Origin: Selaginella moellendorffii
Taxonomy: Eukaryota; Plantae; Lycopodiophyta
Direction of reading: 5' to 3'
NCBI RefSeq assembly: GCF_000143415.4
Contig: NW_003314645.1
Span: 1 to 7,954, forward strand
Length of the DNA: 7,954 nt
A program made the translations under genes and the position numbers. Position 1 is the stretch's first letter; every line of letters starts with the position of its first letter. The notes under the pieces were generated by a model. The model was not told the DNA's origin. It did no database searches and saw nothing but the letters and a program-made list of their open reading frames with translations. Shown here one piece after another: positions 1 through 7,954 of the stretch.

Positions 1-1418
1 CAGACATCAAGGCCGTGTCTTTCGTCGGATCGGACAAGGTTGGTTTGTCGTGAAATTTTGTCGGTTTAGAGTGAATGCCATCTTTTAATAATTTTTATTT
101 TGGAACGCAGGCTGGCATGCACATCTACTCTCGTGCAGCTGCTACGGGCAAACGAGTTCAGGTAAGCTGTCTCCGTGGCTTTGAACCGAAACCAACATTT
201 CCGAGTGTTATTCTCAGTGCAACATGGGGGCCAAAAATCACGCGGTGATTATGCCTGATGCATCGGCTGAAGCGACAATGAATGCTTTAACTGGTGCTGC
301 CTTTGGAGCCGCTGGCCAGCGTTGTATGGCCATCAGTACTGCAGTATTCGTTGGCGATTCAAAGCCTTGGTAAGAACAACTTTTTTCCCTTTGTATGATA
401 TTTTTTACTCGTCGTCGTCTACACAGGGAAGAGGGCTTGAAACAGCGGGCAATGAAATTGAAAATCGGCTGTGGCACAGAGCCCGGTGCAGATCTTGGCC
501 CAGTTATAAGTAAACAGGTAAGAGCAACTAGTAGCTTTTGGTGGTTAACTAGATCTTGGCAGTTCAGGCAAAGGAGCGTATTTGCAGCCTCGTCGAGAGT
601 GGGCTGAAAGACGGCGCGCGAGTTGTTCTTGATGGTAGAAATGTCGAGGTAGGCACTTGCATTGGTTCCTCGCGAGAGAGAGAGAGAGAACTTACAAGAC
701 GTATCAGGTTCCCGGCTTTACAAGTGGAAACTTTGTTGGGCCAACTATACTAGCCGATGTTAGACCAGACATGGATTGCTACAAGGTATGGTCTCTTTTG
801 ATAAGAATGTCGTGAAGACTGAACACCAGTTGTCACTTTAGGAAGAGATATTTGGCCCAGTTTTACTTTGCTTAAAGGTGAGTTTGATTCAAGTCTCGGT
901 TGTGTTACATGAGTACTTACAATCCCAACGCAGGCAGAGACACTTGAAGAGGCGATTGAAATTGTAAATAGTAACAAGTAAGAACGTTTTTTGAGTTTCG
1001 CTCGCGATGATTCTAATCAGATCGTGTATAGATACGGTAACGGGACTGCCATATTCACGACGTCGGGCCCGGCAGCGAGGAAGTTCCAACACGAGATTGA
1101 TGTTGGCCAGGTCGGAATTCTCTCTTTCCAGTGAAACATCTTATTGATCCAAGCGTTAAATCTTTCCAGGTAGGGATCAACGTCCCAATTCCAGTGCCTT
1201 TACCATTCTTCTCCTTCACGGGCTCGAGGGGTTCATTTGCGGGCGACCTCAACTTCTATGGTAAGGTGGTGGAAACGTTTCGAGCTCTTAAGTTTTTGCT
1301 TGGATTCGCAGGCAAGGCTGGAGTCCACTTCTTTACTCACATGAAAACCGTGACGACGCAGTGGAAAGACAGTCCAGGAGGCGTCACAATGGCGTTCCCG
1401 ACCTCCCAAAAGGTGTAG
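1..1418 (+). CDS. ALDH6B: Methylmalonate-semialdehyde dehydrogenase (CoA-acylating), ALDH6 family; 5'-partial, 11 exons visible
   Basis: Hand-spliced exons <1-38, 111-161, 218-369, 427-517, 568-648, 708-785, 842-877, 934-977, 1032-1110, 1170-1260, 1312-1418 (all GT-AG) give [37 protein letters not shown]...[14 protein letters not shown]...EEIFGPV...[12 protein letters not shown]...[41 protein letters not shown]...PTSQKV*. The catalytic Cys is at 323-325. NMGAKNH in place of ELGGKS, together with GINVPIPVP, is diagnostic for MMSDH. Confidence 0.96.
674..689 (+). repeat. (GA)8 microsatellite inside ALDH6 intron 649-707
   Basis: gagagagagagagaga read directly. Confidence 0.9.
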
Positions 1419-1526
1419 AACACACAACAATGTGATATAAAAGGCCAGCGGCTCATTATTTTTGGTTTCCTTTGAATTCAATCTCCTTGTGTTCTCTGCT
1501 GAAAAATCTGTAAGTGAATTTTCAGA

Positions 1527-1532
1527 AATAAA
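1527..1532 (+). promoter_or_regulatory. Candidate AATAAA polyadenylation near-upstream element for ALDH6
   Basis: AATAAA about 110 nt downstream of the ALDH6 stop, inside the 161-nt convergent spacer. Confidence 0.4.
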
Positions 1533-1579
1533 AGTGGATTTCACTCACATAAAAATTGTGGGAACGATGGCGATTGTCG

Positions 1580-3184
1580 CTATTTTGTTTCCTGATCTCC
1601 CTTTGTTTCCTCAGTTCTAGTGTTGGAGGTTTGCTGTTGCTGACTCGTTTGCAAGTAGAAAATGGAGAGAAATGTTGCAGTGAGGTATGGAAACACGGTC
1701 CAAATTCCCTGAGAAAGAAAAAAAAAATTCACTAAGTTTTGCAGCGAAGCTGGTAAAATCTCAAGTACCACAAAAGCTGCTACTCCTGCCAATGCTATTA
1801 CTGGTCGATCACGAAGCATGAAACCAACGCTCATCTGTGACAAGGAGCCCACGGTTTTTGTTTCCCAGATCTTAGAAACGCAAATATATATACCTGTAAT
1901 GGGAGTGTCAGAAGGCCGCCCAAGCAAACTCCCGCAAAGAACTTCGAGGCTTCAATCCCCTAGAACACACGTGACTTATATGTTAGAGAAGCTAAGTTTC
2001 AGGCAAAGAACTTACTTACACTGGCTCCGGCGAGAAATGAAGTTGGATTCCTTGCTCCAACTGAAAATCGCTCGACTGGTGCCAAAATCAAAAGAGTTAA
2101 CTTTGGAGAGAAAGTTGGGCACTAGAATAGCGTACCAAAACCAATGACGTTGCCATAGCGTTGAACAGCTTTAGCGATCTCTTCTAGCTTCTCCCTGCTG
2201 ATTCCTAGCTGCAAAATCGTTTTCACTCAAAGACTCAATCGACTTTTAGCACACCTTGCTGCGGAAAGTCTCCCCAGAACCGGATTGCGCTGTGAGCTTT
2301 CCAGCGTAGAATGGAACCATATCGCTTATACACACTCCCCTGAAAGTCATAGATAGAACGTCAAGGTTGAAAACAAAAAATAAAAACACCACCCACCAGT
2401 AAACCCACAAGATCGTCGACAGAATGAAAGTTCCATTCTGCGAGACAGAAGACCAAAAAACCTCTCGAGTTGAGTTCCAAGTCAAGCTACGAGCAATGGC
2501 TGCTCCAACCTGAAAAAAACTTCCAATTCGAATCGATACAACGAAAGAAGGAAAGCAAACCATCACGAACCCAGACAACGAGCGCTTCCTCACTCACAAA
2601 GAGACCAAATCCAGCAGCCATGAGCAAGAGGAAATAAATCCACCTACACGAGAACGAAGAAAAAAGAATAAGAGAGACCGAAAGGAAAGAAGCATTTGCA
2701 TGCTTACCCGGGAGTTCGCTCTCCCAAAAAGATTTGCCTCCCGAAAATGTTGGCTGTGAAGGAAAATCCCGAGCCGCTACGCGCAAGCTGCGTGGAGCTC
2801 GATACATCCACCGATGTCACTCTCTTTACGGCAATGTATCCCACGAAGAGAAATCCCGTGAGACCGGTGACAACCCCCAGCCACTTCCATCCAATCCTCC
2901 ACCGCTGCTCTTGCTTTTGCGGCACTACTGGCGGTGATTCTTCCAAGAAATCCCGATCATCGGCGGCTGCGCTGCGCCTTGGAACGCTTGCGGATCGCCG
3001 CCTGGATTGCCTGGATCCATTTCTTTCGCAAAGCAAGCAAGGAGAGAAAATATTACCTGACATTGAGAAGAATCGTCGATCGCAATGCCGAGAAATGCTG
3101 GCGCTGGAGACGCGCGTTCTCACATCGGAAATAAGGAGGAGGAGGGACCGTGATCGCGAGCGCCGGCAGCAAGCCCACTGCCAT
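1580..3184 (-). CDS. DedA/VTT (SNARE-associated) family membrane protein, probably plastid-targeted, ~360 aa, 10 exons
   Basis: Exons (minus) 3184-3057, 3001(or 3010)-2708, 2643-2571, 2509-2397, 2339-2255, 2208-2136, 2075-2020, 1959-1894, 1834-1769, 1708-1580 form one open frame of 1083 nt: MAVGLLPALAITVPPPP...RTPGWIYFLLLMAAGFGLFVSEEALVVWVG...WVYWGVCISDMVPFYAGK...VQRYGNVIGFVERFSVGARNPTSFLAGASGIEASKFFAGVCLGG...ETK*. SEE, GxxxSDxxxFYxG, RYG and RFxxGxRxxxxFLAG match DedA motifs. The Ser/Arg/Ala-rich N-terminus resembles a transit peptide. The gene structure is solid; the family call rests on motif recognition. Confidence 0.85.
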
Positions 3185-3209
3185 GGCTGGAAGCTCGCAT
3201 AAACCCTAA
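3172..3209. promoter_or_regulatory. Site II-like motif (AGCCCA, 3172-3177) and telo-box (AAACCCTAA, 3201-3209) at the shared divergent promoter
   Basis: Both motifs are read directly. The site II plus telo-box pairing is a known plant promoter module. Function here is untested. Confidence 0.5.
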
Positions 3210-3277
3210 AAACAGAGCAATGTTAAAAATGGGATATTCTCTTTTAGAACCCAAAACCCTTTTCACAAAGGGGAGAA

Positions 3278-5484
3278 ATGCCACCCTTGGCTATGGCGGC
3301 ATTTCCATCGCCTCGCGGATTCTGGAAGCCGAGCTCGTCGCATTGGCAGGGGCAATGGCGTGGCTTTCGCGGGAGAATGGCGCTGGATCTCGACGAGCAG
3401 GCGAGGATTTCGCTCTCCCGCGCTTGCAAATCCGCCGGCATCGCCGTCGTCGCGCTCTTCTTCTCGGCCGGGGTAAGCCTGAGTGAAAATCCCGCCCTAG
3501 CGGCGCCGGCAGTGGTGGAATCATCGTCAGTGAGGGAAGATTGCGCGTCTTCTTCTCTAGCGGGAGGGATTCCCGACGCCTCGTCGAGCTTGGAGGTAAC
3601 GGATGAGTCTCTTGTGGAATCGGCGTGGGAGCTCGTCAATGATTTCTATCTTGATGCTAGGCACCACAAGTGGTCACCGGATTTGTGGCTGGTAAGTTTT
3701 CCAACTTCCATAGCTTCTTCTCTTTGGTTTTGCAGGAAAATCTCATTCTCGCTTCTACAGGCTCAGAAAGAAAAGGTGTTTCAGAGGCCATTCCAGAATC
3801 GAAAGGCTGCGTACTCGGCTATCAGAGAAATGCTTGCTACACTCGACGATCCATTTACTCGATTTCTAACTCCCGATGAGGTAAAAAAAACAAAAGAGAA
3901 AAATTCTAGCTTTGAGACTTTGCGAGCTAACTCTCTTCTCGCATGCAGGACAGTTTTCCCAAACCTCAAAGTACGATATCACAGGCGTGGGCTTGAATAT
4001 CGGAGAGGTACCGGATGAAAATGGACAAATCCAGCTTAGAGTTCTCGGTATTGTTCTTCAAAGCCCAGCCGAGCTGGCTGGAATTCAGCAGGTTGGTCAG
4101 TGGCTTTCACTCGAGTTCTGATCTTCGCGTGGCAATTTGCTGCTTTTTTCCAGGGTGACGAGATACTTTCAGTGGATGGAAATAGTGTGGCTGGAAAATC
4201 GGCCTTTGCGGTTTCATCTGAGATCCAAGGACGCAAAGGGACTCCTGTTTCAGTCGAGGTATCGTTCGAATTCTATGTTTTCTTCTTTTCTCTTGATACG
4301 CTAAGAGTTTCTCCACGTCCAGGTTCGACGGTCTCAATGTGGAGACGTCCAAAGTTACGTGCTCTATCGCCAGCAAGACTTGCGAAGCCCTGTTTTCTAC
4401 CGTTTAGAGCGTTCTGATGTCGCTAATGAGCGCCGCGGCTATGTTCGGCTCAAGGAGTTCAATGCCTTGACAAAGCGGGACCTGGTCACCGGTAAGAACT
4501 AGCTGATCTTGAAACTCTTGGAACATTGATTCGCCTCTAACCAGGAAAGCACTTGTTGCAGCTTTGATGAGATTGCAAGCATCAGGTGCTTCATCGTTTG
4601 TTCTTGACTTGCGAGACAACTTGGGTGGCCTCGTCCAAGTGAGTAGTGTGGCTTATTTGGCTTCGAAGTGAAACGCTGGTGGACCTTACAGGAAGGTATT
4701 GAAGTGGCCAAGTTGTTTCTGGACGACGGGGAAACCGTGAGTAAAAATCTATCATCTCTTTAAACCATCTGGCTTTGACATAACGCGCAGGTTATATACA
4801 CCACAAGGAGAAATAATGCGTCATTACAAAGTATTGTAGCTAAAGGCCAACCTTTCCTGCGAGCGCCCCTCGTCGTAAGCTTTGTTTCTTCCAACCGGCT
4901 TGTGTTGTGCTCACGTTTCATTCTATTTTGTCAAGGTTTTAGTGAACAACCGGACAGCCAGTGCGAGTGAAATTGTAAGTTTGTGCAGAGAAACGAATAT
5001 AATATGCTTGGAAATCTGGTGCTTTTCAGATGGCTGCTGCTCTCCATGACAACTGTAGAGCTGTTTTAGCTGGTAGCAGGACATTTGGGAAAGTAAGGAC
5101 TAAAAAAAGAAATGATGGTTTCACTGATTTTCTTGCATATCTTGCAGGGCCTGATTCAGTCTGTGTTTGAGTTCAACGATGGCTCTGGTGTAATCTTGAC
5201 TGTTGGGAAATACATGACACCTGCACACAGGGATATTGATGGGAATGGTTTGGAACCAGATTTCTGGAGAATGCCAGGTATTGCATATCAAGAGTCCTTT
5301 TATCTTTCTTTTTGTTCTGTTTTTTTTTTTTTTTTTTTTCTTTTGCCTTTTGTACTTCTTTTTTGTTTGTAATTTTCTAGCTAGGCTCTACGGAATCTAG
5401 ATACAATTCTAAAGTGAAATTTGTACAGGCCACCTTGAAGTGGAGCAGAAGTTGAGAGCTTGTCTTTCAAAAAAGGCATCATGA
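3278..5484 (+). CDS. CTPA1: Carboxyl-terminal-processing peptidase (S41A, PDZ-containing), chloroplast thylakoid lumen, CTPA1-type, ~479 aa, 12 exons
   Basis: Exons 3278-3691, 3761-3880, 3954-4091, 4154-4258, 4323-4491, 4562-4638, 4692-4736, 4791-4874, 4936-4974, 5030-5092, 5148-5277, 5429-5484 total 1440 nt. Motifs: MLATLDDPFTRFL, PDZ (TGVGLNI...SPAELAGIQQGDEILSVDG), GYVRLKEFNA, VLDLRDNLGG, VNNRTASASEI (catalytic Ser), TFGKGLIQ (catalytic Lys). The bipartite N-terminus has a hydrophobic lumen signal ending P-A-L-A. The start may be the ATG at 3293, and the last exon choice is inferred. Confidence 0.94.
5320..5339 (+). repeat. T20 homopolymer in the last CTPA1 intron
   Basis: 20 consecutive T within a longer pyrimidine tract (about 5296-5378). 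Confidence 0.9.
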
Positions 5485-5674
5485 AATTCTTGCTAGCACT
5501 AAAAACAAGAGGAAAAGAAAGAAGAAAAAGCAAATGAAATTTACTTTTTGTATTTGATCTGTTCAATCGATCGATCAAAAAAATAAAAAGTACAAACTCT
5601 TTTAACAAGGCTTTAGAAAAAGGGGAAAAAAAAAAAAGAAGAACCTTTGGCGGAGGAAGAAATTTGCAGTTCTC

Positions 5675-7141
5675 TTAGAACCTCCTCCGCAACGAGCTCG
5701 ACTCCAAACGTGAAGACGCGCTGCTCGCCGAATGCTCTTCGCGATCTTCTTGATCACCGTCTTGCAGTGTTTGCTCATCAGGACCCTGGCTTACATTCCC
5801 CATGCTCCACGAATCCGGGAGCTGCTCAAGACCCGCCGTGACATTCTCGTTGTCCGACGAGTACGAAACTAGCTGTGGATGATCCACGCTGTTGCTGGAC
5901 GACGCCGGCGAGAGAGACGACGGGTTGGCGCACTTGAGACCCGAAACTCCTCCAAAACCACCAGCGAATCCGCCCAGCGCTCGGTACGCAAGCGCTCGCT
6001 CCAAGTTGTCTCTTGGATTCTCGCCCTCCTTCGCTGCTGGCTCTGGCTTCTCCAGGAACTCCGGATAGAAGGAATTCCACCAAGACGAATCCCCTCGCTC
6101 GCACTGGACAGCATCGCCGAGGATCCATCTCGGTAGCGATTCTAGAAAGTCGGTGCGTGCCTGCCGGTCCACCATGTAAGCTAGCAGCGAGCCGAGGCAG
6201 TGTCCTGCGATGATCCCCAGTAGATGGGAACTGGAAGCTTTGCTGGCTATGGATGCAACTAGCTGGCAGCCGCATCCAAAGCATCTCGATCGGACATGCA
6301 AACTGCGAGAGCACAAAATCCCAGTCGGTGAGTCACTGACAGGCCAGAGATGCGAGCGAGTTACCAGAAAGGAACACGGTACAAGAAACTTATAAGAATG
6401 CATTGAGGAAGGAGAACCAACGCCATATCCAGTAGCTTCTGCAGAGATTCGAACGCTGTCAGCAAACCACAGAACTCTCGAAACACGGACGCGCCCACGT
6501 TACTAGTATGATAGAGTTGAAGACCTTCCCAAGACCATAACACGATGGCAAACTGCCAGAGCAAGAGCCTCCTGTTTTGCCTGTACCTGGATGGAGCACG
6601 CACCCCGTGAGAACTTCGTAGCTATTCGAGAGAGCTTACCTCACCATTTAGTGAATAAAAGCTGCGAGGTTATCATCGCCATGCACCACGCAGCAACGCA
6701 AACGTGTGACAAGATCACCACTCCATCTTTGCTCTGCCGAAAAAAGAAACAAAAACAAAGTTTGCAAATGATCTCGAGATGCAAAGACGATAAGAAAACC
6801 AAACGATCACTCACCTGGCCAGCATCAATCGTCCACCAAAGCCGCAAGATGCAAAACGCCAATTCGCAAGCCGCGGGACCGAGATCGTTGAAGTCCGAGT
6901 CGGAACCACATTTCCGGCAATACACCGCTTCCAACCTTCTGTCCTGGAACTTGAGGCTCCACGAGCTAAATCGAACTGGAGTGGCTACCGGATAGTAAAC
7001 CGTGGACACCGCAGCCGCTGCCACAGCTGCTTGTAGCTGAGCATCACCCTGTCGCTGGGCTTCCTTCGCTGCTTCGTGAGCTCTCTCGTACAGCTCCCTC
7101 TCGTGGTCCGAAGCAAAGCCATCAATCTCACCAGTCGCCAT
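5675..7141 (-). CDS. Uncharacterised multi-pass (~6 TM) membrane protein, ~421 aa, 4 coding exons, with an acidic low-complexity C-terminal tail
   Basis: Exons (minus) 7141-6815, 6733-6645, 6586-6365, 6302-5675. GT-AG introns of 81, 58 and 62 nt join three ORF-track frames into one 1266-nt frame: MATGEIDG...SSWSLKFQDRRLEAVY...FTKWYRQNRRLLLWQFAIV...ISFLYRVPFCLHVR...LGSLLAYMVDRQARTDFLESLPRWI...SSLRRRF*. The start context is ccATGG. Confidence 0.82.
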
Positions 7142-7162
7142 GGACAGAGATGAGTATGAAGA

Positions 7163-7195
7163 TTACACGACAACGATTCGAGCCCGAGCAGCCAT
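7163..7195 (-). other. Upstream ORF MAARARIVVV*, in frame with the gene 4 start
   Basis: The minus strand reads aacaaATGGCT GCT CGG GCT CGA ATC GTT GTC GTG TAA. The ATG is 54 nt upstream of the main ATG. Confidence 0.55.
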
Positions 7196-7273
7196 TTGTT
7201 TCTCCTTTCTCTCTGAAAAGCAGAGCTCTGATCCACGGAAGCTTCAGTGCCTCATCATGGAGCACATGGGAAC

Positions 7274-7382
7274 CTAGGAAAAGAAAGAGAAAAACAGCGC
7301 TCATCAGGCACGGAAAGAAGCGAGAAAGCGAAGAAAACAAAAATATTTCCACACATAAAGAGCAAGAACAGCGACATCATAC
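7274..7382 (-). other. Probable 5'-UTR intron of gene 4
   Basis: Minus-strand G|GTATGA donor at 7382, a very U-rich interior, and a ctgtttttctctttcttttcctAG acceptor ending at 7274. No transcript evidence is available. Confidence 0.45.
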
Positions 7383-7561
7383 CCTACGAGCGCCCGGCGC
7401 ACGATATTTCGCCAAGGATCGCGAAATGCAGGATCGCGCAGCCACGAATTCCTCATCCCCGGCGCCGCCACGCAAGAATCATCACAGGAACAAACCAGCT
7501 GATGAGCGACGATCGCTCGCCGCGAGCTGAGACAGCGCCGCGCTCTCCATCGCTTCCCCTG

Positions 7562-7580
7562 CGATCGATCGATCGATCGA
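7562..7580. repeat. (CGAT)4+ tetranucleotide repeat; 7562-7579 is self-complementary
   Basis: cgatcgatcgatcgatcga read directly. Confidence 0.85.
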
Positions 7581-7695
7581 GCCAAAGCCCTAATAAATCG
7601 TCGCGAGAGAGCAGCGATTAGAACCCCTGCCCCACAGCGCCATTGCCTCGCTTCCAAGAGAAGAGAATACCAACCTAGAGAATAGAAACCCAAGC

Positions 7696-7818
7696 TGACG
7701 TGGGTGTCCACGTGGAGCGTATCCCCAAGCATATCCTGACAGGTGGATACACATGTGCGCTGCTGGCACAGAATAAACCATAAAATCCAATAAAGAATTA
7801 AGTAAATGGTCCAATTGG
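7696..7818. promoter_or_regulatory. Putative promoter elements upstream of gene 4: TGACGTGG, G-box TCCACGTGGA, E-box CACATGTG, CCAAT boxes
   Basis: TGACGTGG 7696-7703; perfect palindrome TCCACGTGGA 7707-7716; CACATGTG 7750-7757; CCAAT at 7786-7790 and CCAATTGG 7811-7818. Confidence 0.5.
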
Positions 7819-7954
7819 CGGCCGTACCAGAGTCACATTCCGGCGGCAGGCCGTACCAGTGGCGCGTGGGCTGCCGACTGACCGTCAGATGACGGGTGAG
7901 ACCGACCGTCGCGTGTGGAGCGCAAGCCGTCACACCCGTCAGGCGCGAGTACAG

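Follow-up and report, generated by a model that had tools for sequence, protein, structure and literature searches.

A stand-alone six-helix membrane protein of Selaginella moellendorffii and its streptophyte relatives, resembling the membrane anchor of class III adenylyl cyclases

What is the role, in a plant, of a membrane protein that looks like the anchor of an adenylyl cyclase (AC) and carries no cyclase? The question is raised by a gene on the minus strand of a 7,954-nucleotide (nt) stretch of Selaginella moellendorffii DNA (GCF_000143415.4, contig NW_003314645.1, positions 1 to 7,954; hereafter the window). The gene (LOC112345806/LOC112344807) lies at 5675-7141, has five coding exons and encodes a product of 401 amino acids (aa). 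An earlier note, made from the letters of the window, had described an orphan protein of six transmembrane (6TM) segments with AC-type flanking motifs; all peptides quoted there were found in the minus-strand translation of 5600-7300. The protein is here considered, on balance, to be a stand-alone member of the 6TM signalling-input fold known from the class III transmembrane AC anchor (AC5, AC8, AC9) and from MASE8-type diguanylate cyclases (e.g. ImcA); it would act as a dimeric sensor or scaffold with output in trans. The interpretation as an AC-type anchor is supported. The fold, the motifs at AC-like spacing, the conservation of the family, its expression in Selaginella and the lack of an enzyme domain were observed directly.

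The elements of the protein used in the comparison are listed below from the N-terminus to the C-terminus.

6998..7108, minus strand: conserved N-terminal helix, predicted cytosolic; residues 12-48, consensus ELYERAxxAxxEAxRxGxAQLxAA
6920..6958, minus strand: juxtamembrane N motif SLKFQDRRLEAVY; residues 62-74, family consensus SLxFxxxxLExxY
6170..6883, minus strand: six-helix transmembrane bundle; residues 87-237, exons 1-5, split by four short introns
6125..6169, minus strand: motif at the exit of TM6, DRQARTDFLESLPRW; residues 238-252, aligned with AC8 'DRAQRQAFLE'
5930..5983, minus strand: 18-residue tail motif RALGGFAGGFGGVSGLKC; residues 300-317, invariant or nearly so in full-length members
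5678..5929, minus strand: C-terminal tail, Ser-rich, acidic and of low model confidence; residues 318-401, ending LRRRF

Both AC-type flanking motifs are conserved across the family and aligned to AC8. In the N motif, F65, L70, E71 and Y74 are each present in 11/12 sequences; in the TM6-exit motif (family form YxxDRxxRxxFLxSLPxW), D238, R242 and F245 are present in 14/15 and L246 in 13/15. The stretch SLPxW directly follows FL (S248, 13/15; P250, 14/15), with no intervening coiled coil, and its likeness to the transducer element of cyclases was judged by eye only. Between the two motifs the conserved residues of the helix region are C126, W139, R144, W156, E159, S185, P191, H195, R199, Q206, H227, G230 and Y235.

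The profile of the full-length family, compared with all sequences of the Protein Data Bank (PDB), placed AC8 (8buz) first, at E=0.25. With a profile of residues 52-262 built from 25 sequences, AC8 was the sole PDB sequence at E<=10, at E=1.8e-4. The match consists of three colinear stretches: the N motif and first helices with AC8 158-254, in which HMMER places the N motif on 'FKSRDLERLY' (162-); TM6 and DRxxRxxFL with AC8 319-354 ('SYLSDRAQRQAFLE'); and the N motif again with AC8 688-735 ('FSLMFKDSSLEHKY', before TM7). The spacing from the N to the C motif is equal in the 6TM family and AC8, at about 195 residues.

PF06327 ("Adenylate cyclase, conserved domain") covers the stretch that precedes TM7 in animal ACs. 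It was the commonest sub-threshold Pfam match of the family (6/30 members, best E 0.0015; best named match P0017, 18.9 bits, E 0.0023, cutoff 21.1), all matches falling below the gathering score. The alignments are in the same register (e.g. residues 15-75 of P0017 with profile positions 32-92 of 98), and the N-terminal helix of the relatives aligns to the distal part of the domain. AC_N (PF16214) and MASE8 (PF20968) gave no Pfam match in the scan of 30 members. Among language-model neighbours of residues 52-262, taken as lead-level evidence, AC_N clusters came first (0.94, 0.91), followed by MASE8, MASE2, 6TM_PilS, MASE7 and MASE11.

A further match of the family profile (E=1.4e-4 in 1.84 billion proteins) is the metagenomic protein P0036 (879 aa), in which the unit [LTLRFxxxxLExAY - 6TM - ELxxRxAFxxE] occurs four times in tandem; HisKA, HATPase_c and REC domains are found in relatives of P0036. 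Alignment of the plant module with the P0036-type module by hhalign covered 193 columns (P=7.8e-5, probability 62%). P0036 and P0047-P0052 have 2-6 such tandem AC-anchor-like modules, in some followed by a hybrid histidine kinase; the repeat is without a Pfam model.

The six hydrophobic segments of the earlier note correspond to six predicted helices (residues 87-248; predicted local distance difference test, pLDDT, 75-92). The AlphaFold 2 (AF2) model of the whole protein is confident in the transmembrane part only; the model of this part alone has pLDDT 85.4 and a predicted template-modelling score (pTM) of 0.75. The helices are predicted to have AC-like connectivity and packing, and TM6 (residues 217-248) runs on in the model into a cytosolic helix with the exit motif. 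Both termini are predicted to be cytosolic by the positive-inside rule, because of the basic loops KWYRQNRR (TM2-TM3) and HVRSR (TM4-TM5) and the DRQAR exit.

The expected AC-like 6TM fold was recovered by Foldseek, with ImcA and AC9 on top: ImcA 6TM domain, probability 1.00, TMq 0.59; AC9 entries, probability 0.94-0.99, TMq 0.57-0.63 (best match, root-mean-square deviation (rmsd) 3.8 A over 190 columns); AC8, probability 0.60, TMq 0.51; all unrelated rows, probability below 0.3. Foldseek E-values remain at 0.1-1.4. The VIA search, independent of Foldseek and made over 48,161 chains, gave the following rows: ImcA, 16.5 (3.4; 200); AC9, 14.0 (4.7; 190); AC5, 13.7 (4.0; 201); next row, 10.6; Rv1625c, 8.5 (6.8; 158). 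The shape search of the ESM-Atlas returned bacterial 6TM + Guanylate_cyc proteins (TM 0.67) and GGDEF + MASE8 proteins (TM 0.81, rmsd 2.6 A over 201 residues), together with MASE8 proteins and a 6TM Ser/Thr kinase.

It could be argued that such agreement reflects convergence, the protein being an unrelated six-helix membrane protein (a small transporter, a channel or a membrane-organising protein) with juxtamembrane charges that are AC-like by chance. The sequence matches are all sub-threshold or modest, helical bundles reach high structural Z through their arrangement, and the polar residues conserved within or close to the membrane (E159, H195, R199, Q206, H227) could line a pathway. Against this, the sequence profile, the Pfam matches, two structure aligners, the Atlas shape search and the language-model neighbours agree on one family, and the aligned elements, their order and their spacing are the same from method to method. 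The hydrophobic background is low, because AC8 was the only PDB sequence at E<=10, and no transporter or channel family was matched. Convergence is accordingly considered improbable.

The absence of cyclase, phosphodiesterase (PDE) or kinase motifs, claimed by the earlier note, holds for every member in the Pfam scan. PF00211, the class III cyclase homology domain, gave no match at E<=10 in P0001 (the database protein of LOC112344807) or in 30 members, and searches of Pfam, NCBIfam and PDB sequences with single-exon open reading frames (ORFs) and with the whole protein gave no family above threshold. What follows the bundle had been described as a disordered tail. This stands in that the region (~262-401, 140 aa) has pLDDT below 50 and no Pfam domain; it is not featureless, as the 18-mer RALGGFAGGFGGVSGLKC and a second conserved block are present. 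The block SxRxSLSRQMWxIFYPEL is conserved past the TM6-exit motif and shortened in Selaginella; after a variable spacer follows the 18-mer, the most conserved element of the protein. It is Gly/Phe-rich, with 15 apolar or glycine residues between Arg and Lys and overlapping GxxxG repeats; no known family was matched, and no counterpart is present in ACs. It may serve for docking, lie against or re-enter the membrane, or plug the bundle. The sole match of a tail-only profile against Pfam and PDB was the engineered GGS linker of an M3-receptor construct, rejected as an artefact. The Cys/His-rich helices, in which the earlier note saw a hint of metal or redox sensing, do not offer a family feature: the cysteines of CFGCGC and most others are Selaginella-specific, and only C126, H195 and H227 are conserved.

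The coding exons were placed by mapping the 401-aa protein P0001 back onto the window; contigs derived from RNA (four runs, four studies) were aligned to 5450-7450. The resulting gene structure is as follows.

7381..7668, minus strand: first exon of the 5' untranslated region (5'UTR); upper end estimated from an RNA contig of 1738 nt, 218 nt of it beyond 7450
7272..7380, minus strand: 5'UTR intron, 109 nt, GT..AG; joint 7271->7381 in 4/4 RNA runs
6815..7141, minus strand: coding exon 1, residues 1-109; N-terminal helix, N motif and TM1
6734..6814, minus strand: intron 1, 81 nt, in frame, stop-free
6645..6733, minus strand: coding exon 2; TM2
6587..6644, minus strand: intron 2, 58 nt
6499..6586, minus strand: coding exon 3; TM3
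6439..6498, minus strand: intron 3, 60 nt, in frame; homologues without insertion here
6365..6438, minus strand: coding exon 4; TM4
6303..6364, minus strand: intron 4, 62 nt
5675..6302, minus strand: coding exon 5; TM5, TM6, C motif and tail; stop codon 5675-5677

All four coding introns and the 5'UTR intron are bridged by RNA-derived contigs of the four runs, and each skipped segment reads CT..AC on the plus strand, i.e. GT..AG for a gene on the minus strand; since the spliced form is seen in RNA, the gene is transcribed. The Selaginella transcript was assembled in runs of 8 studies. Its 3' end in the contigs is near 5561, about 115 nt past the stop codon, and no downstream exon therefore adds a domain. 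The lengths of introns 1 and 3 are divisible by three and neither has a stop codon, so that retention would add 27 or 20 in-frame residues. In run X5 intron 2 is read through in a low-depth contig (6560-6666), and a joint 6583->6637 occurs as a minor alternative. The predicted isoform X3 (P0016), with the last exon out of frame, is supported by 0 of the aligned RNA contigs.

The window product and P0001 differ in two residues and are otherwise equal, an allelic or haplotype difference; the window represents the other haplotype copy, because exon 2 matches the second locus, LOC112345806 (P0016). Single-base differences of RNA contigs at 6673, 6878, 6902, 6905, 5693, 5726 and other positions match the second haplotype locus (LOC112344807 vs LOC112345806); 6673 T>A is the Ile/Leu difference between the window and P0001. 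Judged from these base differences, both haplotype copies appear to be expressed. An ACGT-core pair, made up of TGACGTGG (7696) and the G-box CCACGTGG (7708-7715, CACGTG core at 7709), is situated some 30-50 bp ahead of the estimated 5' end (~7668); the pair at 7696-7715 is a candidate bZIP/bHLH-bound promoter element of the 6TM gene.

The protein is no orphan. A word-index search with the terminal ORF of 242 aa returned P0001, identical (100%) over the exon, together with a few relatives; a profile built on the first matches collected 15 proteins, and an exhaustive HMMER search, run over 1.84 billion representatives, yielded 29 relatives, and no more, at E<=1e-3. Named members are from the alga Chara braunii; the hornwort Nothoceros; the liverworts Marchantia paleacea and Riccia fluitans; the lycophytes Selaginella and Diphasiastrum; the ferns Psilotum, Pteridium and Adiantum; Ginkgo, with two paralogues; and Cryptomeria, of the Cupressaceae. 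No angiosperm or moss member is among the named matches, many matches carrying no species name. Family sequences group by lineage in a maximum-likelihood tree, with two gymnosperm clades. No Pfam or NCBIfam model was found for the family, which is a small, unnamed streptophyte family ranging from Chara to gymnosperms. The Chara protein P0026 (GBG86510.1, 951 aa) was rejected as a domain fusion: only its last ~200 aa belong to the family, the N-terminal 740 aa look like retroelement Gag/RT (zf-CCHC and reverse-transcriptase-like (RT) sequence), and it is probably a merged gene model.

This range recalls that of CAPE (COMBINED AC with PDE), a membrane protein of cyclic-nucleotide signalling that is found in Selaginella (PMC8115329, PMC5159850) and is made up of a PDE domain, multiple transmembrane spans and an AC domain (PMC8115329). 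The origin of CAPE lies between Klebsormidiophyceae and Charophyceae. Bryophytes, lycophytes, ferns, cycads, Ginkgo and Cupressales, Cryptomeria among them, have it; Zygnematophyceae, Pinaceae, Gnetaceae and angiosperms lost it (PMC8115329). The co-occurrence with CAPE raised by the earlier note is borne out in that the named taxa largely overlap (Chara origin, unusual presence in Cryptomeria, no angiosperm), but no moss member was found; the overlap is suggestive and statistically weak. Because of it, CAPE or cAMP signalling is a candidate partner of the 6TM protein.

The 6TM protein might accordingly be an accessory or regulatory subunit of CAPE, supplying the AC-type receptor module in trans and acting in sperm or cAMP signalling. 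The named members (Chara, hornwort, liverworts, lycophytes, ferns, Ginkgo, Cryptomeria; no angiosperm) parallel the CAPE range (PMC8115329), and in ImcA the same fold mediates an interaction between transmembrane domains with a partner. However, Physcomitrella has CAPE and no moss member was found; the conifer-like matches P0008 and P0013 could be from Pinaceae; a transcript in runs of 8 studies does not suggest expression restricted to sperm; and the independent losses are few, which leaves the statistical power weak. A subunit of CAPE is on this evidence unlikely. The broader proposal sees in the protein the so far missing receptor or regulator, at the membrane, for plant cAMP signalling; the protein would sense a bilayer lipid or ligand and control CAPE or another effector in trans via RALGGFAGGFGGVSGLKC, a split transmembrane AC design lost with CAPE in angiosperms. 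This proposal is distinctly doubtful. A reading of the protein as a decaying relic of an ancestral transmembrane AC of streptophytes, with its catalytic domain lost and no function of its own, would fit the absent catalytic domain and a best sequence similarity to eukaryotic membrane AC elements (AC8, PF06327) and not to bacterial anchors, but is very hard to reconcile with the retention of the family between Chara and the gymnosperms, an 18-mer that is invariant, conservation at dozens of positions, an intact reading frame, a spliced and expressed transcript, and two paralogues kept in Ginkgo.

For a stand-alone 6TM sensor with output in trans, the following mode of action may be proposed. 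By analogy with its structural relatives the protein would form a homodimer of two 6TM bundles (2x6TM); we infer dimerisation from the structures of ImcA, Rv1625c and membrane ACs (PMC10904736, PMC9433096), and sensing and output in trans are likewise suggested by analogy. The dimer would sense a membrane-borne cue, such as a lipid, a ligand or a transmembrane partner; the extension of TM6 would carry the signal to the conserved cytosolic linker and the 18-mer RALGGFAGGFGGVSGLKC; and through these a separate partner protein would be bound or regulated, in place of an attached enzyme. A regulatory role would fall to the Ser-rich tail, probably as a scaffold or as a region of phosphorylation.

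The remaining features of the window were also noted. A multi-exon gene on the plus strand at 3278-5480 encodes a C-terminal processing peptidase (Peptidase_S41 match on 5112-5369, E=3e-7). It is convergent with the 6TM gene, the gap between the transcript 3' ends being about 40-60 nt (contigs ending at 5497-5525 on one side and starting at 5561 on the other), and long T and A homopolymer runs (5310-5345 and 5575-5640) are present in the short space between the two. Exons at 1-1420 of the plus strand resemble, by eye, part of an aldehyde dehydrogenase (its C-terminal half), and the type appears to be methylmalonate-semialdehyde dehydrogenase. At ~1500-3200 of the minus strand several hydrophobic ORF pieces suggest another multi-exon gene for a membrane protein; Pfam gave no match for three pieces.

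Canonical transmembrane ACs are, in the prevailing view, absent from land plants, and CAPE is, to our knowledge, the one established class III cyclase of plants. A conserved and expressed plant family that consists of an AC anchor and a short tail peptide only is a natural experiment on the anchor's own function (sensing, scaffolding, control of a partner), and a range largely shared with CAPE, mosses aside, makes for a genetically testable hypothesis. An unnamed protein family without a Pfam model, and a new invariant motif, are now defined. New is the eukaryotic, stand-alone, cyclase-less AC-type anchor with its novel invariant peptide; the anchor fold itself was already known.

Compared with known systems, the plant protein differs most in what is attached to the bundle. 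Mammalian membrane ACs (TM1-6 and TM7-12; AC8, 8buz; AC9, 6r3q/7pd4/9u3v; AC5, 8sl3) are pseudo-heterodimers, whereas the plant protein is a single 6TM module; they have a coiled-coil helical domain and a class III catalytic domain (PF00211), both absent from the plant protein, which has instead a conserved linker of ~50 residues, the Gly/Phe-rich 18-mer and a Ser-rich tail. The plant family is confined to streptophytes, and sequence identity to the mammalian ACs is ~10-17%. CAPE, of ~1250 aa, has PDE and AC catalytic domains and four predicted transmembrane spans, the plant 6TM protein, of 401 aa, being without either domain; CAPE is not matched by the family profile at E<=1e-3. ImcA (Pseudomonas aeruginosa, 8wcn) and the MASE8-type proteins (PF20968) are bacterial, with 6TM followed by a GGDEF enzyme domain; they give no sequence match detectable by HMMER and are without the plant N-terminal helix and tail motif. 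ImcA is a homodimer whose transmembrane domain is needed for activity and for binding of the transmembrane partner IsmP (PMC10904736). The tandem-module proteins P0036, P0047 and P0052 (4-6 repeats) share with the plant module the motif frame [hP]LTLRFxxxxLExAY ... 6TM ... ELxxRxAFxxE, and some copies are, like it, without an enzyme domain; unlike the plant protein they have the repeats in one chain, no Gly/Phe tail motif and, where an output is present, a histidine kinase. Rv1625c/Cya (M. tuberculosis, 7yzi), with 6TM and the cyclase 'half' of a mammalian AC, has, like the plant protein, a single 6TM module per chain; it is homodimeric, and its anchor (PMC12505454), as well as those of mammalian ACs (PMC12505454, PMC11606603), is reported to be a lipid receptor.
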